DNA from: Mobula hypostoma
Taxonomy: Eukaryota
DNA length: 64,000 nt
Assembly: GCF_963921235.1 (NCBI RefSeq)
Contig: NW_026948113.1
Coordinates: forward strand, 434,001-498,000
Direction: 5' to 3'
Shown here: piece after piece, positions 1 through 26,680 of the stretch
How positions within the stretch are numbered: the stretch's first letter is position 1
Layout: each line of letters opens with the position of its first letter
Notes under the pieces: model-generated
Databases searched by the model: none
Seen by the model: only the letters and a program-made list of their open reading frames with translations
What the model was told of the DNA's origin: nothing
Made by a program: the position numbers and the translations under genes

Positions 1-399
1 TTAAATTGTTGTCACATGTACTGAGGTACACTGAAAAATCTTTGTACTGCATGCCATCCACAGATAATTGCATTACAATTGCACATTGAGATAATACAAG
101 GGGCAAAAATAGCAAAATGGAAAGCAACTTGTAACAGTTACAGAGGAAGTAGAGAGCAGGCACACAGTAAGGAGCAAGGGCCACAGTATGGTTGATCGTG
201 ACATCAAAGGTTAAACGTGCCGTACTATGGAACTCTACAATACTGTTATAACAGCAAAATAGAAGCTGTCCTTGATCATCAGTGTGTGCTTTCAGGCTTT
301 CGTACCTTCTGCTCAGCAGAAGGTGGGGGAAGAAGAAAGAATTTATGGTGCAGGCGATGTCTTATTCACTGGAGCTTAGGAGAATGGGGTGATCTTATG

Positions 400-850
400 C
401 ATATTAACGAAGGAAGGAAGTCATTAAACTGGAAAAGGTGTACAAAATATTCTCAAGAACGTTGCCAAGAAAGGTACACTTGAATTAGAAGGGGAGGTAG
501 CATAGCTTGGCATTATTTTCCCTTGAATGTAAGAGGTTGAGATATATAGAAAAACGTATAAAATCATAAAGAGCATAGAGAGGATGAATGCACAATCTTT
601 TTCCCAGGATTTGGGCATCAGGAACTTTAGGACAAAGGTTTAAGGTGATTAGTGAAAAATTATAATAGAAACCGGAGGGCCAACATTCTCAAGCAGAAGT
701 TGTCAGCACAGGGAAGGAGATGCAAGAGAAAGTGGTTTTGGCAGCTACATTAACAACATTTTAAACAAAAAAAAAAAAATCACTGGAACCAGTAGGTAGA
801 CAGGAAATGTTTGGTAGTATATGGGCCATGGTAGGAATCTTGGTTGGCAT
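400..850 (+). mobile_element. Decayed CR1-type LINE 3' fragment
   Basis: Sequence resembles the CR1 RT C-terminal region and 3' tail seen in younger copies in this window. Boundaries approximate. Confidence 0.6.
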
Positions 851-1529
851 AGACCAGTTGTGCAGATGGCCTGTTTTTGTTCCGTAAGGGTCTATGACTT
901 CTCTAAATGTCAGTCATTTCTCAGCCAGGCAGTGGCCATTGGACAGTCAGACCTTGACCCACAGGCCCAATCACTTCTCAGTTGTTTCTTTCCTTGAGCA
1001 TCTATTATGTTTCTTTGGCCCATAACTCATAATTGCTTCTTACGACTGAACACAAACAAGAGAAAATCTGAAGATACTGTAACCTTGTAAATAATAACTT
1101 TCAGCAAGGACATGGGACATGTTTTTTGAAGAAAGAAACTTTCAGAGGCGTGTAAGAGAAGAATGGAGCTACTTGATCAGCTCTTTCAAAGTGGTAGACA
1201 CGGTGGTAAAGAAAGCCTACAGGATTTATTAATCAGGGCATAAAATATAATTTGTTTTATTTAGAGAAACAGTACAGACCAGGCCCTGCTGGACCAATGC
1301 ACTACACCATCCAACAACCCACCTATTTAACACCTGTCTCATCATAGGACAATTTACAATGACGAATTAACCCACTAGCTGGTACGTCTGTGGACTATGG
1401 GAGGAAGCCGGAGCAGCCAGAGGATATCCAGGCAGTTCATGGAGAGAACGTGCAAACTCTTACAGACGGCATTGGAACTGAACTCTGAACTACACTACCA
1501 TGGTGTTCTGTGAAGCTCTGGTACAGCTT

Positions 1530-2170
1530 TACTGAGGAGATGCATCATCGGGTCAGTCAAAGAGGTAGGTATAGTGATGAACAAAGTGTACAGGATACGA
1601 GTGTTCATTAATATGGGCACAGAATACAAAACCAAGGAAATTAGGGTACAGCTTTACAAAACATTACCTAGGCTACATCCCAAGTACTTGATGCATTTGT
1701 GGTCACCAGCCCAGAGGAACAATTTGATTGCATGGGACAGAGTACACAGGATATTCACCAGGATTTTATTGGGATGCAATGTTTCAGTGAAGAGGCCAGG
1801 TTTGATTTCCCTGAACGGGAGGAGGCTGAGAGAGGAGCTGATGGCATTATACAAAATTGTTAGGGGCATTGAAAGGAAAGATGTACAAAATGCTGAAAGA
1901 GCAAAGCTTTTTTTTACTGCAGTAGTTTGTATACTGCTCCCACTTAATTTCTTTTATAAAACAGCAGCAAACTTTTCCCCATAGCAGAGGTGCTTATTAC
2001 TGTAGAGGTAGGTTTAAGGCAAGGATTAAGAGATTTAGAGAGAATAGAGAGAAGATTTTTTTTTAATTAATGGGTTAGCGGGAGATGGGAATGCTCTGCC
2101 TAAGGGGCTGGTATAGGCAGACACTCTCACAGCGTTTAAAAATTATTTTGATATCTACGAAGTATAAGAA
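1530..2170 (+). mobile_element. Decayed CR1-type LINE 3' fragment
   Basis: ORF 1574..1984 contains 'EYKTKEIRVQLYKTL.RLHPKY' and 'RRLREELMALYKIVRGI', matching the CR1 ORF2 C-terminus. Confidence 0.75.
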
Positions 2171-2461
2171 GCTGCAGAGAATTGTTGACACAGTCAGCTC
2201 CATCATGGGCAGAACCCACCCCACCACCGAAGACATCTTCAAGCGGTAGTGCTTCAAGAAGGTGGCATCTATTACTCAGGACCCTTGCCATCTGGGACAT
2301 GCCCTCTTCTCCTTTAATGCAATCAGGGAAAAGGTACAGGACTCACAAAGAAGACACTAATCAGAAACAACAGGAATTCTGCAGCTGCTGGAAATTCAAG
2401 CAACACACATCAAAGTTGCTGGTGAACGCAGCAGGCCGGGCAGCATCTCTAGCAAGAGGTG

Positions 2462-2499
2462 CAGTCGACGTTTCAGGCTGAGACCCTTCGTCAGGACTA
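2462..2499 (-). ncRNA. Minimal type I hammerhead ribozyme (PLE terminus)
   Basis: UAGUC-CUGACGA-AGGGUCUCAGCCU-GAAAC-GUC/GACUG: complete core, stem II present, stem I pairs. Confidence 0.75.
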
Positions 2500-2792
2500 A
2501 CTGAAGGAAGAGTGAGTCAGGGATTTGAAAGTTGGAGGGGGAGGGGGAGATCCAAAATGATAGGAGAAGACAGGAGGGGGAGGGATGGAGCCAGGAGCTG
2601 GACAGGTGATTGACAAAAGGGATACGAGAGGATCATGGGACAGGAGGTCCGGGGAGAAAGACAAGGAGCTGGGGGACCCAGAGGATGGGCAAGGGGTATA
2701 TTCAGAAGGACAGAGAGAGAAAAAGGAGAGTGAGAGAAAGAATGTGTGTATAAAAATAAATAACAGATGGGGTATGAGGGGGAGGTGGGGCA

Positions 2793-3086
2793 TCAGCAGA
2801 AGTTAGAGAAGTCGATGTTCATGCCATCAGGTTGGAGGCTACCCAGACGGAATATAAGGTGTTGTTCCTCCAACCTGAGTGTGGCTTCATCATTACAGTA
2901 GAGGAGGCCGTGGATAGACATGTCAGAATGGGAATGGGATGTGGAATTAAAATGTGTGGCCACTGGGAGATCCTGCTTTCTCTGGTGGACAGAGCGTAGG
3001 TGTTCAGCAAAGCGGTCTCCCAGTCTGCGTCGGGTCTCGCCAATATATAAAAGGCCACATCGGGAGCACCGGACGCAGTATATCAC
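2793..3086 (-). CDS. PLE GIY-YIG endonuclease domain (fragment)
   Basis: 'IYCVRCSRCGLLYIGETRRRLGDRFAEH...ATHFNSTSH...EEQHLIFRLGSLQPDGMN'. Confidence 0.9.
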   Translation of the reverse strand: MIYCVRCSRCGLLYIGETRRRLGDRFAEHLRSVHQRKQDLPVATHFNSTSHSHSDMSIHGLLYCNDEATLRLEEQHLIFRLGSLQPDGMNIDFSNFC

Positions 3087-4086
3087 CCCAGCCGACTCAC
3101 AGGTGAAGTGTTACCTCACCTGGAAGGACTGTTTGGGGCCCTGAATAGTGGTAAGGGAGGAAGTGTAAGGGCATGTGTAGCACTTGTTCCGCTTACATGG
3201 ATAAGTGCCAGGAGGGAGATCAGTGGGGAGGGATGGAGGGGATGAATGGACAAGGGAGTCGCGTAGGGAGCGATCCCTGCTGAATGCAGAGGGTGGGGGA
3301 GGGAAAGATGTGCTTAGTGGTGGGATCCCGTTGGAGGTGGCGGAAGTTACGGAGAATAATATGTTGGACCCGGAGGCTGGTGGGGTGGTTGGTGAGGACC
3401 AGGGGAACCCTATTCCTAGTGGGGTGGCGGGAGGATGGAGTGAGAGCAGATGTACGTGAAATGGGGGAGATGCGTTTAAGAGCAGAGTTGATAGTGGAGG
3501 AAGGGAAGCCCCTTTCTTTAAAAAAGGAAGACATCTCCCTCGTCCTAGAATGAAAAGCCTCATCCTGAGAGCAGATGCGGTGGAGACGGAGGAATTGCGA
3601 GAAGGGGATACTCTCGCAGCTATCTGGACTATTCCTCTTCTCACCCTGTCTCTTGCAAAAATGCCATCCCCTTCTCGCAATTCCTCAGTCTCCGCCGCAT
3701 CTGCTCTCAGGATGAGGCTTTTCATTCTACATTCCGTCTGGGTAGCCTCCAACCTGATGGCATGAACGTCGACTTGTCTAACTTCCACTAATACCCCACC
3801 TCCCCGTCGTAACCCATCTGTTACTTATTTTTATACACACATTCTTTCTCTCACTCTCCTTTTTCTCCCTCTGTCCCTCTGAATATACCCCTTGCCCATC
3901 CTCTGGGTTCCCCCGCCCTCCTTGTCTTTCTTCCCGGACCTCCTGTCCCATGATCCTCTCTTATCCCTTTTGCCAATCACCTGTCCAGCTCTTGGCTCCA
4001 TCCCTCCCCCTCCTGTCTTCTCCTATCATTTTGGATATCCCCCTCCCCCTCCAACTTTCAAATCCCTTACTCACTCTTCCTTCAGT

Positions 4087-4124
4087 TAGTCCTGACGAAG
4101 GGTCTCGGCCTGAAACGTCGACTG
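4087..4124 (+). ncRNA. Minimal type I hammerhead ribozyme (PLE terminus)
   Basis: UAGUC-CUGACGA-AGGGUCUCGGCCU-GAAAC-GUC/GACUG. Predicted cleavage after 4119. Confidence 0.75.
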
Positions 4125-4765
4125 CACCTCTTCCTAGAGATGCTGCTTGGCCTGCTGCGTTCACCAGCAACTTTGATGTGTGTTGCTCTAATCAGAAACA
4201 TCTTCTTTTCTTCCACCATTCATGAATGGTCATGAACCCATGAACACAACCTCATTATTCCAATTTTTGCACTAATTACTTCATTTTATAATTTATGTTA
4301 TCTTTCAGTCATGGAGAACTGCAGCACAGAAGCAGTCCATTTGGCCCATCTAGTCTGTCAAAATGCCATTCTGCTTATTCCCTTCAATCCACACCTGGGT
4401 CTAGACCTACATACTCTTCTCATCCACGCACCTTGGGCTGGCAGTCTTCCCTCCAGCTAGTAAATCTCACTAATAGTTACAGTATCATAATTTCATGAGT
4501 TGGTCCATGTTCTGAGCTCATACGCCTTTTATGTCTTTGCACTGTACTGCTGTTGCAAAAGATCAATTTTCATATCATAATTCTGACAAGCACTTGAATC
4601 ATCGAGGAAGAGAAGGCCGAAGTACAGACCAAGTACTGGTTGGAGCAGACTGGCACCAGAGGGTCAGCATGTATGTGGTGAGCCAAATGGCCTCCTTCAG
4701 TACTGTATGAATTTATGAACCACCACAACAGAATGAAGCAAATTCTGTACCGTACAATGACCTAC

Positions 4766-5040
4766 CTCCCTGCACCATCAGTACCCCAGCAGGCTGCTGT
4801 GCTTGACGTGACAGATATAGATGTTCGTATCATTATCCTGCAGCTCAATGACTAGTTCCATCCAGTATGTATCATTGTAGTTTGGTAGCACGGTCACCTC
4901 ATAGCCCTTGGAGACAACCTGTCCATTCTTCAGCCAAGTGGCATTGATAGCACGAGGGTAGAAGGGAGTGATGATGTATGGGAGACTCTCACCCTCAGTA
5001 GCTGTTGGCCTCTTTTTCAACACCTGAACCTCTGGAGCAA
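4766..5040 (-). pseudogene. MHC class I-like alpha3 (Ig C1) exon; first Cys replaced by Tyr, 1-nt frameshift near the 3' end
   Basis: Acceptor ttcattcttccccAG then phase-1 exon 'VAPEVQVL...SLPYIITPFYPRAINATWLKNG...VLPNYNDTY...YICHVKHSSL'. Donor GTAGGT at 4765-4760. Length 275 nt (3n-1). Confidence 0.88.
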
Positions 5041-5825
5041 CTGGGGAAGAATGAAGAATTAACGTCACTAACTCAACACAAACGTATATTATCTTACCAT
5101 TACAAATGGAAGTTACAGTGTCCAAGAGTGGGATTCTTACTCTTTACTGCCTCAGACCAGGACCTACCTCACCATTAATCACTATCCTGCCCGAAATCAT
5201 CTCCTCAGCTCAAGTCCATGCAGACCATAGCCAGCAGTAATTTTCATTCATCTGACAGGCCTAGATCAAGGTTACAGCCACCATTACCAATTTTTATGTC
5301 ACCCATAGTCCCAAGTCAATATTACCTCATATTCCAAGATTGATCATGCCATAATCACCCCAAATTATGTTTAGTTTACCAGCCTTAATTGGGAGATCCT
5401 TCAAAATTCCTGATCAAGAGATGCCCTCAATGTCCTGGATTGGGAGATCTGTTACTGTGTCTAAATGGAAGTTCCAACACAATCCTTGACTTGGACATCA
5501 TTCGTCACCTTCAACTGAGGTATCCTTCACCCCAGATAAGGAGATCGCTCACCATTCAGAATTGGGAGATCCCCCAGTGTCACAGATTGGGACCTCTGTC
5601 ATCTTCTTAGACCAGAACACTGCTCACCAAATTTGGTCATGGCACTTTGATTGTGAGTCCTCTCATTGTGCTGAATCAAAAACTCCCTCACAAACTCAGA
5701 ATCAGGCTGCCCCCATTCATTTGTGTCAAGACACCCCTGAACATCTCAGACCAGGAGTCCATCAATTGTCTGAAGCAGGAGTTCCCTCACAGAGCTTACA
5801 GTATGTAATCAGATGTTCCATTTGC

Positions 5826-6096
5826 CTTGCCTTTCAAGCTTCTCTCTGCCAAGCCGAAAAACCTTTCTGCAAATACTGGATGCAGCTACTGTTCAGCATA
5901 TAAATTTCAGGAATATCAGCAATATTAACTTGCTGAAGATAATCATTGACCAACATCAGGACACCAGTGGTAATACACTTCCCGGTGGTGAAGTCACAAA
6001 TGAGCTCTCCCAAACCTTGGCAGCCGATCTTGAGGAAGGTTTTGAATGTATTTGCAGACTGCGCGCAGCCCAGAAGCCCCTGGATGTATCTGATGC
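5826..6096 (-). pseudogene. MHC class I-like alpha2 exon (not in ORF track); +1 frameshift near the end
   Basis: Acceptor ggtcctttccAG then '(G)IRYIQGLLGCAQSANTFKTFLKIGCQGLGELICDFTTGKCITTGVLMLVNDYLQQVNIADIPEIYMLNSSCIQYLQK'. Shifting frame by one gives 'VFRLGREKLERQ'. Q96, G100, C101 and C164 align with class I numbering. Length 271 nt, GC donor. Confidence 0.85.
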
Positions 6097-6334
6097 CTGG
6101 AAAGGACCAACAGGTTAATCTGTGTTAGTGGCTGAATATTCCAATTCTTCAACCATTCCCACCTGCATAATGTCCTGCTAAACATGTAAATACCATGTGC
6201 ACTGTCTTGTGCAACACGTTCTCAGTAGGGTGAAGTATTTGACATGTCCCCTTTGACCCTCAGTCATGTTTATTGATGTACAATATAGGCATCACAGCTT
6301 GCTATGGCATCAGGTCTGCTCATGATCACAAGAA

Positions 6335-6539
6335 GAAGAAGAAGAAAGCCCGAGTGGAGTCATTGGGACGCCGTCATGATGGTGTTTTTTTAGCTGGCTT
6401 TCTTATTTTTAAAGAGGCCGAGTTGCTAGCTCGACGCTCAACCCAGCATGAATGGAAAGCGTGCAAGGGAGACGGCTGGATTCGAACTTGGGAGCCTTTG
6501 CTCAGAAGTTCAGTGCTGATGCCACTAGTCCACCGGCTA
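6335..6539 (-). mobile_element. tRNA-derived SINE with (TTC)n tail and 17-bp TSD
   Basis: Box A-like GGTGGACTAGTGG and box B-like AGTTCGAATCC on the minus strand. TSD GCTCATGATCACAAGAA at 6318-6334 and 6540-6556. Confidence 0.8.
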
Positions 6540-6639
6540 GCTCATGATCACAAGAAACTGCAAAAAGTTACGGATACAGATCAGCACACACAGTCTCCCC
6601 GCCTCCATACATTCTACCTACATTTCTTGCTGCTTCAGT

Positions 6640-8810
6640 AAATCAGACAACAAAATCAAAGACCCCATCCATCCACCAGCTTTAAATTGGGGTAGGGCAA
6701 ATTATAAGGGCATTAGGCAGGTACTAAGAAGCGATAATTGAGAACACTTTTTCTCTGGCAAATCTACAATAGACATGTGGAGTGTGTTTAAATATCAATT
6801 TCTAGAGTACAGGAAAAGTATGTTCCTGGTTAGAAAGAAGGACGGGGATGAACCTTGGATGTCCAGAAAGGTAATGAACTTCAACAAGAAGAAAAAGAGA
6901 AGTTATAAAAAGCTTTGGAAGTCAAATCAAACAAAGCATATGAGGAGTATAAACAATCCAGAAAAGAATGAAAGAAGGTAATTAGGAAAGCCAGGAGGGG
7001 CCATGAAAAATCCTTGACAAGTAGCATGAAGGTGAATCCCACGGCATTCTACACATACGTCACAGGATAAAAGGATAAGTAGGGAGAGGGTGGAACTGCT
7101 CAAGGATGAAGTGGGAAATACTTACTTGGATGCTAAGAATGTGAATGAAGTACTTAATAAGCACAGTGCCTCAGTATTTACCGGAGAAAAGGATATGGAG
7201 GACTTGGAGATCAGCACTGAGTGCAAAATACATTAGGGCATTTAGAGGTTAAGGAGAAAGCAGTGTTGGGCATCCTAAATAGGAGTTCCCACACTATCTG
7301 TGACTTGGACATCATTAGGAGTATTAAGGTGGATAAAGCCCCAGGGTTTGATGGGATTTACCCCCGATTCTTGTAGGAGGCAAGAGGTGAGATTTCTGGG
7401 CCCTTGACCAGCATCTTTGTGTCATATCTGGCCACAAGCAAGATTGTAGAGGACTGGTGAGTGGTTAATGTTGTACCGCTATTTAAGATGGGAACAAGGG
7501 AAAATCCTGGGAACTACAGACTGGTGAGTCTCACATCAGTTGTAGGGAAATTATTGAAGAGAATTCTTAGGGACGGGATTATGAGCATTTGGAAACCCAT
7601 GGCCTAATGAGAGAGCCAGCATGGCTTTGTGTGTGGCAAGTTGTGTCTTACCAACCTAACTGAGTTTTCTTTGATAAGGTGACAGAGAGATTGATGAAGG
7701 TAGGGCAGTGGAGGATTTCAGTAAAGCATTTAACAAAGTCCCTCATGGGAGGCTAATCCGGAAGATTAAGATCTATGGTTTCCATGGCAAATTGGCTGTT
7801 TGGATTTGGAACTGGCTTGCACGTAGAAGACAGAGGATGGTGGTTTAAGGGAACTATTCGAGCTTGAGGTCTGTGATTAGTAGAGTTGCACAGGGATTTG
7901 TGCTAGGACCTCTGCTGCTTGAGACGTATATAAATGACCAGGCTGAAAAGTAGATGGATGGGTTGGTAAATTTACGGTTGATACCAAGATTGGTGAAATT
8001 GTGGATAGTGTAGACGACTGGCAAAGGTTACAGCATAATACAGATCAGTTGCAGAAAAAATAGCAGTTGGAGTTTAACCCAGATAAATGTGGGGTGTTGC
8101 ACCTTGTAGGGCAAATGCAAGGATACAGTACTGTTAAGGGCAATGTCCTTAACAGTGTTGCTGAGCAGAGAGCTCTTGGGACCAAGTTCACAGCTCCTTG
8201 AAAGTGGCTACACAGGTCAACAAAGTGGTTAAAATGGAATGCTTGCTTTTATTAGTTGTGGCACTGAGTTCAAATTTCAGGAGGTTATGTTACAATTTAA
8301 TAAATCTCTGGTTCGGTCACATCTGGAGTATTGTCTGTGGATCTGGCCAACCCACTTGAGGAGGATGTTGAGGCTTTGGAGAGGATGATGAAGAGGTTCA
8401 CCAAGATGCTGCCTGGTTTAGAGGGCACATGCTATCACAAGAGGCTGGATTAACATGGGCTTCTTTGGAGCATGGGAGGACAAGGGGTGATCTGATAGAG
8501 GTTAAAGAGGGGCATGATTAGAGAGCATTTGTTCCCCAGGGTTGAAATGTCTAACACCAGAAGACATGTATAGAAGGTGAGAGGTGTTAGGTTCAAGAGG
8601 GATGTGAGGGGTAAGTCTTTTCTTTACTCAGAGTCATCGATGCCTAGTATAGTGGTAGAGGCAAATACATTAAAGGACTTTAAGAGACATTTGGATAGGC
8701 ACATTGATATAAGGAGGATGGATGTATATAGATGTGGTGTAGGTAGGACGGATTAGTGTTTGGGTGTTTTTGATTAGTGTTTTAGCCGGTTCAGCACAAC
8801 ACTGTTGTGC
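6640..8810 (+). mobile_element. Decayed CR1 LINE ORF2 in intron 2 of the class I-like gene
   Basis: Recognisable CR1 RT remnants (KAPG.DG, GNYRLVSLTSVVGKL, QHGFV, D.SKAFNKVPH equivalents) with many stops. Confidence 0.85.
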
Positions 8811-10142
8811 TCTTCTGTGTTCGATGACATTCTCTCTTCTTCCCCATCCCATAGGGCAGAAGATACAAAAGCCTGAAAACATATATCACCGGGGTCAAGG
8901 GCAGCTTTTATCCTGCTGTTATCAGTCTATATATAGTCCCCTGGTACAATAATATGAAATCCTGACCTCACAAACACCCGTATTATGGCTTTACACCTTA
9001 TGGTCTGCTTTCATTGCACTTTCTCTATGACTGTAACAACTCACACTGCATTCTGTTATTGCTTCCTCTTGCACCTCAATGTACTGTGGTAATGAAATGA
9101 CATGTACAGATGGCGTGCAAAATGAAGTTTTTCACTGGACCTTAGCAGATACGACAATAACAAATCAATTTACCAATTTACCATGAAGCACACAAAGCAA
9201 TGGCAAAGAGCATGGGATCACAGTGTTCTGCATGCAGTGTGTGGTACACATGACAGGATCAGTAATGAACATGAGCATGAGAGTGTGGCACAGTGGAATA
9301 TTGATGGTGGAGGGGGTGATCTGTACAGAGTGTACATCATTGCATGATGTAATGCAGGGGTCGTGTTGAAGGACTGTGTACTGCACATCAGTGTGTGGAG
9401 AAGGTAGCACACCAACATCTTTGCTTCGAAGTCTAAGGAGATTCAGCATGTCATTGAAAACTCTGACAAATTTATAGAAATCACATCCTAGTATTGAAAC
9501 TCTCTCCCATTGAGGACATTTACCAGTGAAGGTGACATTCTTCAACAGGGACAACCACCATCAGGGCCGTGTCCTCTTCCCCATGCTGCCATCAAGCATG
9601 AGTTCCAGTAGCCAGAAAACCCACACCTCAAGGTTTAGCACCTTTCCCTCCACTGCCATCAGGTTCTTGAACCAAGCTGAAAAACCCCAACATTACCTCT
9701 AATGATTTTTCTCTCAATTTGCACAAGTATCATTATGTTTTTGTACACATGCAAATTACATGTAATATATTTGAATTTTACTTTATATTAACTTATGTTT
9801 GCTTGACCTGTGCAAGGCCAGAGAGGCAGTGGATCTGATTCTCGCTATTTCTCGGAGAAGATCAGTGTAGAGTGAGCGGTGGGTTCTCAGAAATAGATTC
9901 TCAGTGTGTTTTGAAGGGCAAAATTTCTCTTGCAAATGTGGGATACAAATGGAATGCTTTTAATTGAAGGTAAATATTTGTTATAGGATGTTGAGAGGGC
10001 ATACAACCCTTGAAAGATTTGAAACCAAGGATAGGAATTTTAAAACTGATACAACCTAATTGGGTCCATTGAAAGGTCAACATGTTTTCAGTGTGCAAGT
10101 CACTGTGAGCCTCGAAGAACAGCGGAGATCAAAGACACGTAC

Positions 10143-10391
10143 CAGGCATCGACACAAATGGAGTCAGATTATGAAGAAGTAAGTTTTTAATTATGTCCGG
10201 GATCTCTTTCTGGTTTTTCCAGTTGTTAGCTGAAAAGCCGTCCATGATCCACTCTTGCTTGGCTTCTACCCTCTGGATGGTGCTGTCATAGTAGCATATC
10301 TGCAGGTCATCCAACATCCCAACCATGGAGATGTACAGCAGCTCAGGAATGTTTATCGAATGGAGGTAGAAATATGTCAAGCTGTGGGAGA
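10143..10391 (-). CDS. MHC class I-like alpha1 exon (open, 83 codons)
   Basis: Acceptor ctttttttcAG then phase-1 exon 'SHSLTYFY...SMVGMLDDLQICYYDS...EAKQEW...NWKNQKEI'. Donor GTACGT at 10142-10137. Length 249 nt (3n). Confidence 0.9.
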
Positions 10392-10532
10392 CTGAAAAAA
10401 AGAAGAGAGTGAGAGAGGAGTGTGAGAAAATAACTAAGGATGCCCTCCATTTATAAGGCACAACTCAAAGGTCCGGTGGAAAACTGTCCACTTGCCCAAA
10501 TTAATGCATAGGCACACAGATTAGGCACTCAC

Positions 10533-10597
10533 CACCCCCCAGTGATTGGCTCCCCATCCACGTGGAACCACCACCACTAAAACAGGCCTTATTGCAT
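10533..10597 (-). pseudogene. Probable disrupted leader (signal peptide) exon of the class I-like gene
   Basis: ATG at 10597 and GTGAGT donor at 10532-10527 give a 141-nt intron to alpha1. The hydrophobic 'RPVLVVVV' and the phase-1 end 'WMGSQSLGG' are in different frames. Confidence 0.5.
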
Positions 10598-11336
10598 CGG
10601 CCAGGAATAAATCCCAAGCTGCTCTGGATAGAAGAACCCAACTGCAGTGGGGATGGAAAATGAAGGTTCTCAATCCTCCAAACTATTGAGCAACTTGGGT
10701 ATCACCATTGAAGATGCTTGGATAGGTACACAGATAGGAAATGTTTAGAGGGATATGAGCCAAATGAGCCAAGTTAGATGGTAATCTTGGCTGACATGGA
10801 CCTGTTGGGTCCAAGTGCCTGCTTCTGTGCTGTGAGGATGTAGCAACAACTCTTGACACTGACTAATTGAGGGCTTGTCCAAAATTGAGAGAGCATAGAC
10901 TTAGTACTATCCGGACCTGAACACCATTGTGGATATATCCACACCTTGAGTACTGCACCAGGTCAAAAAGACAGCTCACAGCCACCTTCTCAAGGACATC
11001 TTGGGTTGGGGAATTAAACAGTGGTTCATTTTGTGAATCCATGTCCATGAGTGAATGAAGCAAATAAAATATTTTTTAAATGAAGCCTTATTTACCACAT
11101 ATGTAACACTACTGTAGCACCTGTCTTACTGTGTGCGACTAGTCGCTGCACTCTTTGAGAAAATCAAATTACATAGTACTACACTGGGTGCTAGTAGGCC
11201 ATCAGAAGCTTCTAGGTATCGGAAGGAGGCAGTGAATAGAAACCACATACTTCTGGAGATAAGTTCTGTTTATAAGAAAACAACAATATGTACAAACTAT
11301 TTACATGAGCAAGAACAATTCAAAATTCCAACATTC

Positions 11337-12307
11337 TGTTCAGGTTCTTGATCTTAGATATCAAATCAAAACAAATTCCTTTTTAATTAGAATCAGTGAG
11401 ATTCCTTTATTACTCTAATTTCTCTAACTAATTAGATCTAGTGTAGTTCCCTATTTAAAAGTTTACAGACAACATTTTCCTTTTTACTTATCCCTAGTTA
11501 GTTAGAAAACCAAATATAATTCCTATTCTTAAGCATTATAATTAACTTCAGTTTCATTTCCAGTGTATCTACAAAAATTATATATACACAGTTTAACCCC
11601 TTTCATAATTCTGCAACTTCACAACTTTTAAACAAAGTAAATCTCATTCAGTGACTTATCAAAGTCTTTGCAAAGTAATCAGTTCTTTCAGAAAATCTAA
11701 TTCGGATTCTTTGAATGAAAATGAACTTACACATCCAACCATATTAAATCCTTTGCGTCATTACACATTTCGTTCCTGTGCTGGCTCATTGAATCTTGAG
11801 TAGCTCGCCGAATCTTGAGTAGTTCACCATCTTCTTTTTTGGCTCATTGCAATGATATAGTTTATCATCCACGGCAAGTCAATTCACAAACTTGCACAAA
11901 AACTTGACCAAATCCCTTGGTATGATTTTATAAAACTAATGTCCAGTTACACGGTAGAGATTTTGGACACTCGTCTCTGCTGATATTGTCCCGTTTTTGC
12001 TGCTGCATGTTACAGCCATAGCTTCAATAAATCTTTGATCACTGTTGTCTCTTCTCCAGGGGTTTCACCCTGAGATTTTCAAGTTACCAGGGTAAAGCTA
12101 CGCACTAATAATTCCACTCTTAACAGTTAGTGTCTTCAGCTTCTAATCGTTTCTGCGTTTCTCTCACTGCCCGTGCCTGCGTCAGCCACACCTTGTTCTC
12201 GCACAGCATTTTTTTTTTCAAGTTCTCTTTGGTAAACTTCATTTTCATCCCTCTGCAGGTGGAACTTTCTAACATTACGTCTTTGGGTTTAATTAACCTG
12301 GGTTACA
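11337..12307. mobile_element. LTR-like element (TG...CA)
   Basis: Starts TGTTCA, ends GTTACA. Flanks CATTC / CATAC, a possible 5-bp TSD with 1 mismatch. Confidence 0.4.
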
Positions 12308-12324
12308 CATACACTTTCAAACAT

Positions 12325-13140
12325 AGGAAAATATGGCGCCTAACGTGACTCCTTTGTTTGCATCTTCGGAAACAGCTCTACAGTATTTCTATCTTTAATA
12401 TCTCTATTTTTCCCTTTCAGGGTCCTTTTGAAGACCCTGACCTGGAGTTACATGCTGACTATGGTTCTTTGCGGGAGAGGGACCCACTCTCGGGTTTCAC
12501 AACTGGCCGCGGTTCGGCACACCAAGGGCTCCAGCCTAAGATTTCAGCTTGTCTTTAGAGGCCTAAGATCTCGGGGCTCTGGACAGCGGCGGATCGAAAG
12601 TCGGTGACACGGCAGGAGATCCGTGTGTCGTCAGGAGAGCCGGAAGATCTACGGCTGTGTGCCCAGAGACCTGAGATCTTTGGGCATAGAGCTCGTAAAA
12701 AAGAAACGCAAAGGACTTTTAACGTCGTAAACTAGCGAGTTGTTTGTTCTATCTCCCCTCTCGCCGTGAAACAGAGACATCTCTTTCTCCCTTATTAGGG
12801 AGAGAGAGAGAGCCTGTAGTATGTCAAATGCTGGGTGAACAAAGTAGTCTTTGGAGTACTGCACTGCAAGTCTTTGTCTTTACTGTTGTCTTGTTCACGC
12901 TCGAGTGCACGGTGGTGGATGCAGATGTTTTTTTTTGCCGGTGGGGGAAAGGGGGGATTGTTGCTTGCTGCCGCTGATGTGCTGGAAGGATGGGAGCTGA
13001 GGGGGACTTTGGGGTTCTGACATTTAACTGTTGTTCATTCTTTGAGGCACTCCTCTGTTTTTGTGGGTAGGTGCAAAGAAAAAGCATTTCAGGATGTATA
13101 TTGTAATATTTCTCTGACATTAAATGTCCTTTTGAACCTT
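12325..13140. repeat. Interspersed repeat of unresolved class, CpG-retaining
   Basis: Abrupt change to CpG-rich sequence beginning AAAATATGGCGCC, with no coding signal. Class not determinable here. Confidence 0.35.
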
Positions 13141-14514
13141 TGAATGCAGTTTGCATCAAATTAAAACAGCTGTTGAGCATCAGGTAAGTGTTTCTGCATT
13201 TCTAGTGTCCACATAGCATGGCCACAACTCACTAATCCTAAATTGTACATCTTTGGACGGTGGGGACAAAGCACAGCATCCGGAGGAAAGTAACAAGATT
13301 ACGGGAAGAACATACAAGCTCCTTACTGACAGCAGTGGAAGCTGACCCCCGATCTCACAGTTTTGCCAACTGCTACACCAACCATCTTGAATTGGTGTCC
13401 CAGCTGTGGTTTTGTGGGTCACACGCTCACCTCCCACACTAAAGATCATCACATTTCTGCCCCACCTAATACTTTTGCCTTTGAGGGAAAACTGCATTGG
13501 GTGAGGTGTTAGGTTAGGTGGAGCCCCTGTCTGACTCTGCAGGTAAACCATGGCTCTAATTAGAGAGTTACCTCCCCCACACAACATTCATAGAAGCTCT
13601 CAACCAATGTCACCGAAAGCCAAACAGGACATCACAAAACACTTCAAAGGATCTTGATGTTTACAGATTAGCAGCTGCTTTTCCTCTGTTAATGATCACG
13701 TTCAGGGAAAACACCATAGATTTGGTCAAGATGTTGTCACAATTGAGCAAGAATCATTTTTGACAAATGAGGGTAAAGTTCTTAGCATTGCATAGCCAGA
13801 CCGCACAAAGACAGGCCATTTGGTCCATTATATGCATGCGGACCAATGAGGAGGGCGAGGTCTTTGGGTCGAACAAGATCTATTTCCTTGGTGACGTGTA
13901 ACAGACTGTCTTAATGGGGCAGTTAAGATCAGATTAATTGTTCTCGTGTGATGTCTGTGTTAAGGTGATGCGGCTGTCATCTTTGGGCATCTGAGGGGCT
14001 GGGAAGGTTTGCGTACGCTCGCAACTCATCCACCAAGCTAATTAAGCTGATTGGGGTTGGAACGATGGACTAAGCCCACTGTTGGGAGTTTTCTCTCAGG
14101 CAGGAAGGGGGTAGAGATGGCAAGAAGCGATGGGGATCTCAGAGGTAGCGACTGGAGGAGGGCAAATGGCAGATTTCTGGGAAACGGAAAAATAAATAGC
14201 TTATTGAAGATTGTAGAGGCTTATCCTCCAGTGATGAAGGCAGCAGATAGGATTTAAATAAAAGAAAGAAGGAAGAGTTTAAGGTTTTGCTGAGTTTTGA
14301 ATGTGGGTCTGCTTCCAATATAAATCAATCATAGTAACTAAGGATTTGTAGCAACTGTGGAGGAAAACGTAGCTCTGATTATCCAGGATGTCCTGCATAA
14401 TGTTGTGGAAGTGGCAGCATTTTCAGGTGGAAATAGGTATATCATATGCAGAGGCTCTGCAGAAAATATAGAAGACAGTATCAATGGGATCTATTAATAT
14501 CCAGAATGCAGATA

Positions 14515-15132
14515 CAAGGGGTGATTGACAAGTTCATGGCCTAAGGTAGAAGGAGTCAATTTTAGAAAACCTAGCTCATTTATTTTTCAACAGAGTCCCC
14601 TTCTACATGTGCACACTTAGTCCAGAGGTCATGGAACATACGGATCCCTTCTTTGTAGAAGTGGTCCACAGCAGGGGTGATTGATAACTTTGTGGCCTAA
14701 GGGAGAAGGAGAGGATTTATTAACTTCAAACTTTCTGCATTATCACTCAAAGAGTTGAACTACACGTGCATGTAACGAGAGCGTCTTGGACCTCCAGGTG
14801 GTCCACAGCAGGGGTGATTGTTAAGTTTGTGGCCTTAGGTCAAAGGAGATGGGTTATACAGCTCTTGTTACATGCACATGCAGTTCAACCCTTTGAGTGA
14901 AAATGCAGAAAGTTTGAAGTTAATAATATCTCCTTCTACCTGAGGCCATGAACTTATCAATAACCCCTGCCGTGGACCACTTTCTGGAGGTCCAACAGAC
15001 TTCTACACTGAAGGGATCCGTATGTTCCACAACCGTTGGACTAAGTGTGTAAACGTAGGAAAAATAAATGTGCTAGGTTTTCTAAAATTGACTCCTGCAA
15101 CCTGAGGCCACAAACTTATCAATCACCTCTTG
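14515..15132. mobile_element. Tc1/mariner-derived fold-back MITE
   Basis: TIRs CAAGGGGTGATTGACAAGTTCATGGCC ... GGCCACAAACTTATCAATCACCTCTTG, TA TSD at 14513-14514 and 15133-15134, inverted arms of about 270 bp. Confidence 0.85.
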
Positions 15133-15329
15133 TAGTTTAATGGCATTGTGTAAAGTTTATAATTATATAACAAAGGATTCTCTGATTGTTGATAAACTTT
15201 CATGGCAGATGTGGTAAATTGTACAGCACAAACTGAAATAGGACAAATATTAAAATTATGTGAAAAGCAGAAGAAAAACATTGACATTAAATACTAGAAG
15301 CTATTAATGATGTCTTTCAAGGAGTAAAA

Positions 15330-17290
15330 ATGCTCACATTTCAAAGGAGAGTTGTTAATGGCTTTTTAATCTTACAATGGAATTCTAGAAGCCTGTTAGC
15401 TAGTGGTCAAGAGGTTAAGAAATTTATTGCAGATTTCCCAAATAAACCTGATGTCATGTGTATAGGAAACCTGGTTGAAATCCTGTCAGTTTCAAAATAC
15501 AAAGTTATGTTAACATAAGCCATAATTGGAAAATGGGCAATGGAGGAGTGGCTACATTTGCCAAAACTGGGATAGCATATACAGTAGACTTTTGGAGTTT
15601 GGGGTTGTTTATGAGTCAATTGTGGTTGAAATTTAGGGAAGCTGAGATACCTCAACGTGTGTAGCAGGATATTGGAGATCTTTTACCAGTCTGTTGTAGC
15701 AAGTCTTCTTTGCTGCTTTTTATTGGGGGAGCAGCATTGGAGCTGGTGATGCAAAAAGACTAAATATACTCATCAAAAAGGCTGGATCCGTCCTTGGCTA
15801 CAAACTCTTTTGAGCAAATGGTGGAGGAGGTCACGAAACAAACTGTTATCCATTATGGACAATCTGGCACATCCTCTCCATTACCTACGGAATAAGTAGC
15901 GGAGCACCTTTTTGAATAGACTCATTCAGCTCTGCTGTCATAAGGATTGTTACAGAAAATCTTTCCCACCAAATGCAATATGCATATACAACAATTCATC
16001 TCATTGCAACAGAACACGCATCCTAGTACATTCGTCCCTGCTTTATTATTTCATACATTATTATTGCATTTTATTGAACATTGGTATGTTATTATGCTGT
16101 ACATTATTGTTAGTTAGTCTGCACACTGCTGTGTGTTTTTAAATGCTGCTACTGTAATGAAAGATTTCCCCTCTTGGAATCAATAAAGTACTTATTATTA
16201 TATAGACCTACTTTGCTAATTTCACATGTATGTAAGGTAATGGAACAAATAGTTATCACAAGGCTTCCTATAGGCTGTATACACATCTGGATTTTGTAGA
16301 AAGAGTGATGATGGACTTGATATTAAGTTTGGAATTTGATATTCTTAAGGCTCAAGTTAATAAAGAACCAGTGGTGGCAGTTTTCTTTGATTTAGAGAGA
16401 GCTTATTTGTTATAGACACAAGGGTTGCTACTTAAACTGGAAAAGATGGGAATAAGTGGTAGATGTTTTAAATGATAGAGAGATACAAGTTAGGGTAGAA
16501 ACACCATTCTTTAAGGAGTATGAAATAGAGAATGGGACCCCACTCCTTTTATTATGATTAATGTTATCTTCTTAATTGTTGGCTTAGATATTTCCAGATC
16601 ATTATATGCTGATGAAGGAATGCTGCAGCGTGGAAGAGAGGCAAGGACATAAGTTATATAGTTAGGAAAATGCAGGCAGCTATTAATGAAGTAGAAAAAC
16701 TGGTGATGTCAGTGTGTGGTTAAATTTTCTCTTGCACAGTCTAAATTTTGTTTGTCTGAAAGGAACATTACACCCACACATGATCTCAAGCTTTATATTA
16801 CATCACTTAAACAAGAGATACTGGTGAAGCTTTATGTTTGTAGATGGATATAAGGCTAATATGCTGCGTTCACCTGCTGCGTTCACCAGCAACTTTGATG
16901 TGTGTAACATGGATAGTGCATGTGAATAAAATTCCAGAGAAATGTCGTTAACGTGCTCAGTTGCTTAGTTGGGTGTGAGTAGGAGGTCACTTAAGTAAAT
17001 GTATATTGCTTTAATTTGTATTTGATTATGGATGTGTTGCCTCACCAGTGGTCTTAAAGACCCTAGATAGAGCTCAATCTCAAGCATTCAGATTATGTTG
17101 TGGTACTATTAAATCTCCCAAATTCTACTATTACTGGGAGAAATGGGTGAAGTACCTTTTTAGTTGGGATAAGGGAATAAAACAACGGCTTTTATATAAA
17201 ATTCAGAGGATGGTGGGAACTCAACTAGGAGGTAGATATAAAAGGAGAGAAGTCTTATACACTTACATATTGGACATACTAAGTTGATTA
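15330..17290 (+). mobile_element. Decayed LINE (I/Nimb-like), EN and RT remnants, interrupted by other repeats
   Basis: 'VNGFLILQWNSRSLLA.GQE.KKF...KPDV' (EN start) and 'VAVFLDLERAY', 'YADEG', 'LDRAQSQAFRLCCG' remnants. Confidence 0.65.
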
Positions 17291-17536
17291 ATGTGCATGA
17301 TGTTGGCATCTGCAGTGAGTGTATTTGTCAAGAAACAGTGCAGCATATATTGTTTGAATGCAGTTCCTAAGAGGTGGAAAGGAAACTTCTCATTGCTAAA
17401 TTGCGATCTTTGGCACACAGGTAAACATGGAAAGTTTGTTAGGATACCACTGCCGTCTAATGTGTTTAAGTGAGCATTGACGTTCATTGTGATGAGCATC
17501 AGACTTTTTGATATTACTTGAGATTTTCTTGGTGAT

Positions 17537-17537
<1 letters not shown>

Positions 17538-17567
<30 letters not shown>
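17538..17567. repeat. (GT)15 microsatellite
   Basis: Direct read. Confidence 0.95.
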
Positions 17568-17568
<1 letters not shown>

Positions 17569-17639
17569 GGGGTGGGGGGCGGGGTGTGATTTCGTGAATA
17601 TAATTCCTGTCTCTTCACTCCACACCCCAACTCAGTAGG

Positions 17640-19200
17640 TGGCGGTAATGCACCTTATGTTGGCCTGCCTACTGCCGTTAAACTTCACAGGGGAAAAAGA
17701 TCTTTTGGAACCCGCGACAGATCTCAAACGCCAGTTGAACATTTTCAGTGATAATTTTATCCCGAACTTAGAGACTCCAGAAATTCCCCAGCATCTTGGA
17801 TTTCCTCTCTAGGACACATGAATGCGATGCACCAGTTCTCCAGTCTAATGGGGGCACGTCTGGGATCTCTGGAAGATTAGGGGTGAGTTTCCAAAGCGCA
17901 ACTCCAGACCTTTAAAACCATCACGCACCCTCGCCTTACCTGCCTGGCTTCCCGCAACAGAGCAGAGAGACAATATGGTGAAAAGGAGCGATCCCGGTCC
18001 GTTCCAACTCTCCATTGCGGTGTCTCCTTACCTCGACAAATCTACTCGTTGGTCAATAAACTGCTGAGGGCGCAGATAAGATTCACGGAGGCAGTTCGGG
18101 AATAAATAGTGCCTGCTACAAGGAGCAGCCAGTAAGAACTCCTGGAACTAAAAATCTTCCTGCAGAAATAACCAGCCCGCCGCTGCTCTGGAGTGTGGAG
18201 GGTGGGAGGCGGGGCGGTAGACAGCCGGCCAGGCACAGGATGTGCAGTGGAGGGTGCGGAGCCGAACCACTTCCAGTAAGGATGTGGGCACATGCAGACC
18301 GCGACAGAGAGGCGCAGGCAGCAACACCCAGTCACTGACACATCTCCGGGCAGGTTTCCAGGACCCTCCCAGGAGATGTTCACCACATACCGGCTCCGGC
18401 CGCTGTATAAAACAGGGGTTCCCAATCTTTTTTAATTCCATCGACCAATATAATTAAGCAAGGGGGCCATGGACCCCAGGCTGGGAATCCCCGCTGTAAA
18501 ACAAAACTGATGCAAGAACTCAGCGGGTCAGGCAGCATCTATGGAGGGAAATGCACAGACGACGTTTTGGGTCAAAGTACTTCATCTAGACTGGAAGGGT
18601 AAAGGGCAGGTAGCCGGCTATGTGAAGGGCTGAGAGTAGAGATAAGATTCCAAAACGTCAACTGACCACTTCCCTCCACACGAGATCCCCCAGAATTTTG
18701 GTTTCTGCTCTAAATTAAAGCGACTACTTATTCACGTGTCTCTGTGCACTCGATTCTCCGGATCTCGTCTCTTGCGCCCTCGCTCCTGGACAACTAGGAT
18801 TACACTTTTGTACAATACACTGCCAGACGCCAGTGCGGACTTCCTTGCAAACTCATTGCTCCCCAAGCTGCACCTATCCCTCTCCCAACCCCCACTTCCT
18901 CACTTGCTTACACCCCACCCTGTCCCTTTCCTACGTGCGCGTTCTTCATTCGTGCACGCGCTCCCGTCCCGCCCAAGCGCTCTCTAACCCCGCACGCTTT
19001 CCCCAACCCTTCCCCACCCCGTACGCTCTCCCACGTTCCTTCATGCATCCCTTCTCTCCCTCATACCCTGTCGACTACACTATGTGCCCTCTCCTCCCTC
19101 TTGAGTTCCCCCACTCAGTTGGAGTCTGCGTGCGGTTCCACACTACAAGAAGGATGTGCGAAGAGTATAGAGGATGGAGAAGAGATGCATCCGAGAACGT
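17640..19200. promoter_or_regulatory. CpG-island, promoter-like region
   Basis: CpG visibly retained against a depleted background. GC boxes GGGAGGCGGGGCGG at 18204-18217, an ETS core near 18268-18274, and a minus-strand donor GAG/GTAAGG at 18031. Confidence 0.55.
18413..18493. mobile_element. Small hAT-like MITE
   Basis: Imperfect TIRs CAGGGGTTCCCAATCT / AGGCTGGGAATCCCCG. TSD only partially matched. Confidence 0.55.
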
Positions 19201-25006: not shown

Positions 25007-26680
25007 GTGGAACTACAATCACAATATACTTTATTATTAACTCATCCTAATGAAGGATATTTGCTTAAATTTAAAAGTCAGTTTTATATTTTTGGGGATA
25101 AAAATAATAGGCTATTAGTTTCCCAATTATGGGCTGCTAAAGCTAAAAGACAAATTTTAAAGGTTCGTAAAGATACTGGAGATATAGTAAGTAATTATGA
25201 TATTAATAATATCTTTCAGGATTTTTATTCTGATCTTTATAAATCTCAGTTTCCAGCAGATCCCTCTAAAATGAAAGCTTTTTTATATAAGATTAAATTT
25301 CCTCAAATTACTGCTGAAGATCAACAGACCCTTCATGCTCCAATTGATGAGCATGAAATTCAGAAAGCTATATGGTCAATGCAATCAGGTAAAGCTCCTG
25401 GACTCAATGGTTATTCGGTAGGATTTTACAAAAAATTTGAAAAATTACATTCTCCATACCTTTTGGAAATATTTCATGAATCTTTTGAGAAAGGTAATTT
25501 ACCCTCTTCTTTTTATGAAGTTTCTGTTTCTTTAATCCTTAAGAAAGATAAAGATCCTACTGAATGCTCATCTTATAGAGCTATTTCGCTATTAAATGTG
25601 GATGCTAAAATTCTTTCCAAGATAATGGCTAAATGTTTGGAAAACATTTTATCTAAAATTATCTCTATGGATCAAACTGGCTTTATTAGAGGCTGTTACT
25701 CTTATTCTAATGTTCAGAGATTGATGAATATTATATATTCACCATTATCCAAAACACCCCAATGTGTTATTTCTCTGAATGCAGAAAAGGCATTTGATAG
25801 AGTTGAATGGACTTATTTGTTTAATGTATTAGAGAGATTTGGCTTTGGTAATAATTTTAATAAGTCGATTCAAATGATCTATAAGAACCCTATCGCTACC
25901 ATCATTACTAATAATCTTAGGTCTCCCTTTTTATTGCTTTCACGAGGTACTCGACAAGGGTGTCCATTAAGTCCTTTATTATTTAATCTCGCATTGGAGC
26001 CTTTGGCTATAATAATTTGCGAAGCTAACAATATTCATGGTATTTCTATAAATGGGACCGTACATAAGATTTCTCTCTATGCAGATGATCTTTTGGTTTA
26101 TATCTCGAATCCTGAAGAATCTATTCCTAATCTTTTGGAATTATTAAATGATTTTGGAAAATTTTCAGGATATAAACTTAATTTAAATAAAAGTGAATTG
26201 TACCCTTTAACTGTTCCTGTTTTTATAAATAAGGATATTCCATTTCGAGTTGTGAATTCTTTTGAATATTTGGGTATTATCATTACAAGAAATTATAAAG
26301 ATCTTTATAAAGCTAATGTAGTTCCTTTATTGGACTCTATAAAACAATTATTTTCTAGATGGAATCCTCTTAGACTTTCCTCAATAGGTCGTATTCATGC
26401 CATGAAAATGATTATTTTACCTAGATTTTTATATATTTTTCAAAATACACCTATCTTCCTAACCAAAAAATTTTTTGATCAGATTGATTCTACTATTTTG
26501 TCCTTTATTTGGAATAATAAAAACCAAGAGTTAATAAGTTTCATTTACAAAAAATCTAAAAAAGAAGGTGGAGTCGCGCTACCGAATTTATGTTTGTATT
26601 ATAGGACTGTTAATATTCGACAATTATATTTTTGGTTATATTGGCTCGATAAGAACCAAAAACCAGTTGGATTGATTTAG
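25007..26680 (+). CDS. L1 ORF2 reverse transcriptase segment (open 557 codons)
   Basis: RT motifs 'SYRAISLLNVDAKIL', 'AEKAFDRVEW', 'TRQGCPLSP', 'YADD'. Confidence 0.9.
   Translation: MELQSQYTLLLTHPNEGYLLKFKSQFYIFGDKNNRLLVSQLWAAKAKRQILKVRKDTGDIVSNYDINNIFQDFYSDLYKSQFPADPSKMKAFLYKIKFPQITAEDQQTLHAPIDEHEIQKAIWSMQSGKAPGLNGYSVGFYKKFEKLHSPYLLEIFHESFEKGNLPSSFYEVSVSLILKKDKDPTECSSYRAISLLNVDAKILSKIMAKCLENILSKIISMDQTGFIRGCYSYSNVQRLMNIIYSPLSKTPQCVISLNAEKAFDRVEWTYLFNVLERFGFGNNFNKSIQMIYKNPIATIITNNLRSPFLLLSRGTRQGCPLSPLLFNLALEPLAIIICEANNIHGISINGTVHKISLYADDLLVYISNPEESIPNLLELLNDFGKFSGYKLNLNKSELYPLTVPVFINKDIPFRVVNSFEYLGIIITRNYKDLYKANVVPLLDSIKQLFSRWNPLRLSSIGRIHAMKMIILPRFLYIFQNTPIFLTKKFFDQIDSTILSFIWNNKNQELISFIYKKSKKEGGVALPNLCLYYRTVNIRQLYFWLYWLDKNQKPVGLI

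Follow-up and report, generated by a model that had tools for sequence, protein, structure and literature searches.

The window, a 64,000-nucleotide stretch of an unplaced 516,489-bp scaffold of Mobula hypostoma (lesser devil ray; GCA_963921235.1), carries a gene that on its sequence is UFA, a known elasmobranch class Ib lineage, and neither a new lineage nor CD1 itself. The copy is most probably a degraded one, a pseudogene or a null haplotype evolving without constraint. The original prediction, made from the letters alone, was of a nonclassical MHC class I-like gene in a cartilaginous fish; both the host and the match to UFA in three domains bear this out. The gene is not intact: a frameshift, the replacement of an Ig-domain cysteine by tyrosine and an early stop were found.

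The gene lies on the minus strand and consists of a signal-peptide exon (18015-17940), alpha1 (10391-10143), alpha2 (6096-5826) and alpha3 (5040-4766). Exon 1 (17940..18015) has its ATG at 18015, encodes a 25-residue signal peptide and ends in a phase-1 GT donor at 17939-17938. By tblastn it is identical in 25 of 25 residues to the leader of P0001 (M. birostris XP_072113440.1), in 24 of 25 to that of P0169 and in 23 of 25 to that of P0151, and its phase-1 donor joined to alpha1 gives the Val codon typical of the family. The leader had previously been placed at 10540..10597 on the minus strand. That segment is not an exon; it reads ATG CAA TAA, and no frame offers a hydrophobic signal that begins with ATG and has a phase-1 splice.

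The alpha1 exon (10143..10391, minus strand) comprises 249 nt with 82 full codons, an AG acceptor and a GT donor, both ends in phase 1. It matches 8gm8_A, the UFA chain, with E=2.7e-14 and Pfam MHC_I with E=4e-4, which is below the cut-off; an RNA contig from a relative spans exactly 10142-10394. The alpha2 exon (5826..6096, minus strand), preceded by AG, is 271 nt in the window and 270 nt in relatives, and matches 8gm8_A with E=2.5e-6. A spliced contig of RNA run X18 shows the junction 10142|6095 and ends at 5826. Behind this position, where alpha2 ends in the relatives' transcripts, the window has GC (5825-5824) and not GT, which may be damage or a GC-AG intron that has been conserved. The alpha3 exon (4766..5040, minus strand), an Ig C1-set domain, is preceded by AG and followed by a GT donor at 4765-4764, with E=6e-12 against Pfam C1-set and E=2.2e-19 against 8gm8_A. 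An RNA contig of a relative matches the window up to 4765 and then continues for 474 nt elsewhere. The three minus-strand domain exons proposed earlier are real, and of the phase-1 splice sites proposed with them, both ends of alpha1 and the AG acceptors stand, whereas alpha2 lacks a GT at its end and alpha3 meets a TGA before its donor.

The exons were also said to lie among transposable elements. The alpha1-alpha2 intron indeed holds a high-copy transposon block (6276..9033, no strand assigned) with a word depth of 1e3-3e5 in every run, including a weak RVT_1 match at 7708-7848, and the UFA copy is flanked on the scaffold by transposable elements only. A search of the window for other class I exons, with full-length relatives and the peptides of the three exons as queries, recovered only the 18015 leader and one orphan tail exon (39664-39588).

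The assignment to UFA takes its name from the PDB title of 8gm8, "shark nonclassical MHC class I, UFA"; the literature search found no paper naming 8GM8. In the PDB search 8gm8_A is the best match for alpha1, alpha2 and alpha3 alike. P0169, the sister copy of full length, reaches 190 bits with 8gm8, 97 with UGA (9ch4) and at most 79 with all others. The AlphaFold model of P0151 (pLDDT 80.8) has 8gm8 as its top Foldseek match, with a TM-score of 0.89 by target. An ML phylogeny places the gene inside a UFA clade with support 100/100, 22 rows and a stem of 0.8, separate from UGA-like and class Ia-like chains, in a tree whose rows include no named UBA, UDA or UEA sequences. Within this clade the gene is sister to the M. 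hypostoma chromosome copy P0169, in a ray subgroup with about 40% identity to the shark proteins.

The signatures of the lineage are present as well. With 8gm8 the window shares GMLDDLQ-x-YYDS, two 4-residue deletions (at the alpha1 helix end and in the alpha2 helix), an extra alpha2 cysteine pair of the form Cys-x6-Cys and the alpha3 motif FYPRAINATW; it differs from 8gm8 by the alpha2 frameshift, the tyrosine in place of the Ig cysteine, a stop before the tail exon and the lack of a detectable tail exon. UGA, the second-best PDB match and a second shark class Ib molecule reported to bind lipid, is about 29% identical to the window, has no helix deletions, forms a separate clade, and possesses a transmembrane segment and a cytoplasmic tail (P0075). 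The gene had been suggested to represent either a known chondrichthyan nonclassical lineage or a new one; the title of 8gm8, the sequence ranking and the tree decide for the known one. Since the gene groups in a described lineage with a solved structure, the gene call was right, the novelty is gone, and no new MHC lineage is added. Nor was the locus undescribed, being already in RefSeq as XP_062894932.1 (P0164).

A reading of the gene as a new lineage or as CD1's true orthologue, in place of UFA, is extremely unlikely. The hydrophobic groove-facing alpha2 helix and the automatic NCBI names, CD1c-like or CD1d-like, would agree with it; the 42% identity and the 100/100 clade with shark UFA-type sequences do not. 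CD1 reaches 62 bits, where UFA has 190, UGA 97, and MR1 and class Ia 70-79, and it does not occur among the top 50 Foldseek matches of the P0151 model. The stretches once likened to CD1 include GMLDDLQ-x-YYDS, which is a UFA signature and is found in 8gm8 too. CD1 (e.g. chicken CD1, 3jvg) is reported to be alike in holding lipid in a hydrophobic groove and in its beta2-microglobulin partner, yet in sequence and fold it is no nearer to UFA than MR1 or class Ia. The alignment shows that UFA tails have a hydrophobic end and no cytoplasmic residues, so UFA, unlike CD1, has no tyrosine endosomal-sorting motif.

In PMC10751288 and, at second hand for lipid binding, in PMC12562908, UFA is reported to be CD1-like in its groove, to bind lipid rather than peptide, and to be linked to the MHC. 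The sawfish members, identified by NCBI name, appear to lie in an MHC-Ib cluster adjoining B2M on chromosome 34. The earlier view of a lipid-binding lineage agrees with those reports. We infer that lipid binding extends to the ray subgroup. The loss of the peptide-end anchors was correctly predicted: among the classical class Ia anchors only Y7 is clearly kept, the equivalent of Y59 is N in the window and Y in many members of the UFA family, and the Y84/N86 and T143/K146/W147 stretches fall in the two family-wide 4-residue deletions of the alignment. Against alpha1, the nurse-shark chain 6lup reaches no more than 22 bits. The alpha2 helix region is hydrophobic, as had been noticed, with a mean hydropathy of +0.24 versus -0.83 in a classical-like chain, which is suggestive of a groove compatible with lipid binding. 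The supposed lack of a glycan sequon near the alpha1 end is doubtful, as N-L-T stands at residue 75 of the mature chain, seven residues short of where alpha1 meets alpha2.

Three lesions separate the window's copy from its intact relatives. The first is a run of five T at 5857..5861 (minus strand) in place of the four found in relatives; the added base puts the reading frame out, so that it meets a TGA at 5836-5834. With four T, the alpha2 frame continues to ...LGREKLERQ and reaches its phase-1 end at 5826. The extra T is seen in no relative, and DNA runs X1 and X5 and RNA run X18 have one base fewer at 5859/5860 throughout all their depth; these public runs all differ from the window haplotype by 2-4% in unique sequence. 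The extra T would be genuine and not an assembly error.

The second lesion is a Tyr codon, TAC, at 4976..4978 (minus strand), which replaces the first Ig-domain cysteine of alpha3 (C220). This column holds Cys in all 12 intact UFA members and both outgroup rows, and Tyr in the window and P0169. In alignment A1 the Ig cysteine is kept in 28 of 30 rows, the exceptions being P0169 and one distant outgroup.

The third lesion is a run of four G (4784..4787, within 4778..4787, minus strand), where intact copies have five. The resulting -1 shift leads to ...LLGY and a TGA at 4780-4778, ahead of the alpha3 GT donor (4766|4765) and any tail exon. The same shifted frame ends P0169 in LLGH and P0001 in PGH, so that the one-base deletion is common to the window, the chromosome copy XP_062905767.1 and the M. 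birostris paralogue XP_072113440.1. An extra base behind 4783 occurs only in organism B, which is P0168-like with ...PGALMVQG. On both strands of 1-4780, tblastn, six-frame Smith-Waterman and blastn with the orphan tail gave nothing above background that could be a tail exon of this gene. The stop before the donor together with this result points to a defective copy and not to another family. As for a functional class I heavy chain, the frame is interrupted at TGA 5836-5834 and the Ig disulfide cysteine is a tyrosine. We infer that the lesions abolish function, and the copy probably makes no working protein.

The frameshift is concealed in the existing annotation. XP_062894932.1, a "CD1c-like" product of 198 aa, agrees letter for letter with the window in alpha1, in alpha3 and over the opening 27 residues of alpha2, splicing at an internal GT donor (6015..6016, minus strand) that bypasses the broken part of alpha2, as ...KIGCQ|VAPEV... 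The existence of the model and its proper phase-1 GT at 6016|6015 would suit a real 198-residue product that combines alpha1 with a quarter of alpha2 and with alpha3. Such a product is very unlikely: it begins with 'MF' and lacks a signal peptide despite the intact leader exon at 18015, it misses the whole alpha2 helix, so that no groove is possible, and no RNA contig among those aligned uses donor 6016, while one continues to 5826. XP_062894932.1 is an artificial model, and the present reading corrects both its wrong start and its artificial splice.

P0151 (M. birostris XP_072113434.1) and P0002 of Hemitrygon akajei are intact subgroup-A UFA genes with 91% and 82% identity and the same exon plan; unlike the window, they keep the cysteine, read ...PGALMVQG and ...PETMMVQG across the alpha3 end and have the hydrophobic tail. 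In intact relatives the gene encodes a signal peptide, then a platform whose alpha1 and alpha2 helices are shortened and whose alpha2 helix is hydrophobic, followed by the Ig C1 domain that serves beta2-microglobulin and by a tail that is short, hydrophobic and devoid of a cytoplasmic part. P0001 shares the -1 shifted ending and the identical leader with the window and keeps the cysteine. P0169 (XP_062905767.1) shares the shifted ending, Cys220Tyr and Pro283Leu; its alpha2 frame is open, and 27 of its 285 residues differ from the window. The window's copy belongs to a Mobula sub-lineage in which a one-base deletion at the alpha3 end removed the tail; in M. hypostoma this sub-lineage has also lost the Ig-domain cysteine, and the scaffold copy further has the one-base insertion by which the frame ends within alpha2. 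A correctly spliced mRNA of the latter would give about 193 residues with alpha3 absent, a product that could not pair with beta2-microglobulin.

Decay is also suggested by the evolutionary rate. In the ML tree the terminal branches of the two truncated copies measure 0.057 and 0.047, compared with 0.014-0.026 in intact Mobula copies, and the Tajima relative-rate counts are 12-15 versus 3-4 (p=0.013-0.077). The window and P0169 differ in 9.5% of residues, while P0155 and P0172, an intact neighbour pair likewise from scaffold and chromosome, differ in 4.7% (Fisher p=0.025). Protein change in the truncated M. hypostoma copies is thus 3-4 times faster than in intact relatives, which we read as relaxed constraint on these sequence comparisons; it could instead reflect diversifying selection.

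In another reading this UFA paralogue works and, having no anchor, is secreted; the stop would be an adaptation by which a soluble, lipid-binding class I-like protein is released, and the extra T would come from misassembly or mark a null allele that is rare. The shifted ending (PGH, LLGH or LLGY) occurs in XP_072113440.1, XP_062905767.1 and the window, and its presence in both Mobula species indicates that it persisted across the species split. The 285-codon frame of P0169 is open, RNA contigs show splicing of a near-identical version at the boundaries of alpha1, alpha2 and alpha3, and of the 52 columns invariant among intact members only 2-3 are broken in the window and likewise in P0169. 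Because P0169 is open and it or a close version is transcribed and spliced, the entire truncated sub-lineage may still be in use. This reading is nonetheless rather improbable. The Ig cysteine widely conserved in A1 is lost in both M. hypostoma copies, which are also the fast-changing ones; RefSeq models the M. birostris copy without alpha1 and alpha2; and a 5-base run is seldom miscounted in HiFi assemblies. Degradation of the window's copy remains the preferred reading. Run X1 was considered as P0169 and rejected, as it shares P219A and Y285H and lacks the other P0169 alpha3 changes, and represents a third version.

There is an equally small chance that the tail-less Mobula UFA was kept as a secreted soluble lipid carrier, a 'soluble CD1-like' molecule, the window being a null haplotype of it. 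If so, the soluble form arose by a one-base deletion before M. birostris and M. hypostoma split, and UFA, for which a single copy or few copies had been described, divided into two old subgroups and reached about six loci or more in genomes of the stingray order. In devil rays and stingrays UFA is multi-copy and falls into two subgroups, and the tail-less sub-lineage common to two Mobula species bears on the birth and death of lipid-presenting class Ib genes. An Rfam search of the window gave no matches. The automatic NCBI names, which carry no lineage information, include CD1c-like, MR1-like, HFE homologue, ZAG-like and class II beta-like.

The class I-like gene of the window belongs to UFA, an elasmobranch class Ib lineage that is already known and whose structure is solved; it is not a new lineage. 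With alpha3 as query, HMMER retrieved ray proteins of 81–93% identity from a set of 1.8 billion proteins, and one of these, used as query in turn, brought up a ray family of class I-like proteins. PDB 8gm8_A is the best match for each domain (alpha1, 2.7e-14; alpha2, 2.5e-6; alpha3, 2.2e-19) and, for alpha2, the sole significant PDB match. The PDB titles are 'shark nonclassical MHC class I, UFA' for 8gm8 and 'UGA' for 9ch4. P0169 (XP_062905767.1), the full-length copy on the M. hypostoma chromosome, scores 190 bits against 8gm8, 97 against 9ch4, at most 79 against MR1 and class Ia chains, and 62 against CD1. Among the fold matches of the AlphaFold model of P0151, an intact M. birostris relative (XP_072113434.1; pLDDT 80.8), 8gm8 ranks first (TM-score 0.89, normalised by target). 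Chicken class I, YF1 and MR1 come after 8gm8 and 9ch4; CD1 is absent among the top 50.

In an ML tree of 32 sequences, the UFA clade (100/100) stands on a long stem and comprises two shark sequences, one electric ray sequence and two ray subgroups. Subgroup A contains the window together with P0002 of Hemitrygon akajei and P0151 and P0168 of M. birostris, and P0169 is the window's sister. The original prediction had left the choice between a known and a new chondrichthyan nonclassical lineage; the PDB titles, the match scores and the ML tree point to the known one. The stretches thought to be CD1-like are UFA motifs and indicate no CD1 homology.

The family alignment displays the UFA signature GMLDDLQ-x-YYDS. 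The alpha1 helix lacks four residues at its end, and the alpha2 helix lacks another four; these two 4-residue deletions coincide exactly with the sites of Y84/N86 and T143/K146/W147 in class Ia. Alpha2 carries an extra Cys-x6-Cys, and the UFA tail is short and hydrophobic, without a cytoplasmic part. The alpha2 helix was predicted to be hydrophobic, and its hydrophobicity is indeed clearly higher than that of a classical-like chain (+0.24 versus -0.83). The binding region of UFA was reported to be CD1-like, and UFA to map to an MHC-Ib cluster (PMC10751288). Crystal structures and mass spectrometry reportedly indicate CD1d-like lipids for both UFA and UGA (PMC12562908). Sawfish family members, going by their NCBI names, lie in the MHC-Ib cluster on chromosome 34, adjoining B2M. 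The earlier guess of lipid binding fits this literature, the function being putative for the window's copy. An N-L-T sequon at mature residue 75, close to the end of alpha1, is kept across subgroup A; given the 4-residue deletion, it may substitute for the class Ia N86 glycan.

All exons are on the minus strand. The alpha1 exon (10391..10143) comprises 82 whole codons between an AG acceptor and a GT donor, and both of its ends are in phase 1. The alpha2 and alpha3 exons start at 6096 and 5040, each preceded by AG, and alpha3 encodes an Ig domain of the C1-set type (Pfam E=6e-12). Part of the alpha1–alpha2 intron (6276–9033) is a transposon block of very high copy number. Exon 1 (18015..17940) encodes the true signal peptide, all 25 residues of which agree with the N-terminus of M. 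birostris XP_072113440.1. The exon ends G|GTAAGG, and its final G, joined to two bases from the beginning of alpha1, completes the Val codon of intact relatives. The gene therefore spans at least 4766–18015, not 4766–10597. The ATG at 10597, taken as the leader in the original prediction, runs directly into CAA TAA, and no ATG-started hydrophobic signal exists in the frame suited to phase-1 splicing. The predicted four-exon gene was mostly right, with three clean class I-type alpha exons, and wrong in its leader and its intactness.

The RefSeq model of the locus, XP_062894932.1 (M. hypostoma, 198 aa), is named 'T-cell surface glycoprotein CD1c-like' and lies on an unplaced scaffold of 516,489 bp in GCA_963921235.1. 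Over alpha1, alpha3 and the initial 27 residues of alpha2, its sequence is identical to the window's. However, it begins with 'MF' and not with a signal peptide, and it exits alpha2 at an internal GT (6016|6015), thereby losing the alpha2 helix and hiding a frameshift. The model is artificial, and RefSeq models of UFA loci are in need of correction.

Joined as the genome reads, the exons give ...YLQKGFSAWQREA and then a stop inside alpha2. The state of this copy is accounted for by three lesions, one in alpha2 and two in alpha3. The assembly has an extra T in a run of five (5861–5857, minus strand); this run is one base shorter in the DNA contigs from two related samples and in a spliced RNA contig. 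With four T, the frame stays open past ...LGREKLERQ to a phase-1 end at 5826, the exact exon end in the relative's transcript, after which the window has GC, not GT. In alpha3, a run of four G (4787–4784, minus strand), five in intact copies, turns ...PGALMVQG into ...LLGY and a stop ahead of the donor at 4766|4765. P0169 (LLGH) and M. birostris XP_072113440.1 (PGH) end in the same shifted frame, which marks the deletion as genuine and as predating the split of the two species. No tail exon was found on either strand in the 4.8 kb downstream. Persistence of this ending in both species would suit the main alternative, in which the tail-less sub-lineage works as a secreted UFA and the scaffold allele is null or mis-assembled. 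Yet the first Ig cysteine of alpha3 (4978–4976, minus strand) is Tyr in the window and P0169 only, whereas it is Cys in 12 of 12 intact UFA members and both outgroup rows of the family alignment, and we regard a working secreted form as improbable. The window's UFA copy is most likely a pseudogene or a null haplotype.

The window and P0169 also change faster. Their end branches in the ML tree are 0.057 and 0.047, against 0.014–0.026 for intact M. birostris copies, and, judged against H. akajei as outgroup, their private changes number 12–15 versus 3–4 (p=0.013–0.077). Scaffold and chromosome versions differ at 9.5% of residues for window/P0169 and 4.7% for the intact neighbors P0155/P0172 (p=0.025). 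The faster change fits relaxed constraint; diversifying selection could produce it as well. Spliced RNA contigs of closely related versions show the exact alpha1 bounds, the alpha1–alpha2 join and use of the alpha3 donor. Among the public runs examined, every one 2–4% off the window in unique sequence, no RNA contig matches the window's own version.

UFA is single- or low-copy according to a 2025 review. In Myliobatiformes it is multi-copy, and the ML tree resolves two old subgroups. Stingray-order genomes contain at least 6 UFA models in M. birostris, 6 in Hemitrygon akajei, 3 in Hypanus sabinus and 2 in Pristis pectinata. P0168 (XP_072115050.1, M. birostris) is a 581-residue RefSeq model with two complete UFA ectodomains in tandem and one tail; it probably arose when neighboring duplicates were fused by read-through.

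An intact-looking orphan UFA tail exon of subgroup-B type lies at 39588–39664 (minus), in phase 1 and behind an AG acceptor; its product begins G-L-G-E-P-H-G-A-G-P-I-L and continues as a hydrophobic stretch up to a terminal TAG. No alpha exons were found upstream of it across 39.7–64 kb, and the 64 kb hold no recognizable host gene besides the UFA copy. Positions 1–200 and 401–600 show moderate contig depth (up to 238) in 4 of 4 RNA runs, surrounded by near-zero regions; they have no detected class I similarity and could be a neighboring gene's 3' exon or UTR, or a low-copy repeat. Long LINE reverse-transcriptase ORFs (RVT_1 E=1e-13 to 2e-36) occur at 25007–26680 on the plus strand and at 27433–29166, 32559–33971 and 52659–53555 on the minus strand. 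At 2497–2793 (minus) and 3892–4089 (plus), together with 2793–3086 and 3111–3788 (both minus), two inverted copies of one proline-rich ORF lie on either side of a GIY-YIG ORF (Pfam E=1e-4). The arrangement looks like a Penelope-like element, and every RNA run shows an extreme word depth there (1e5).
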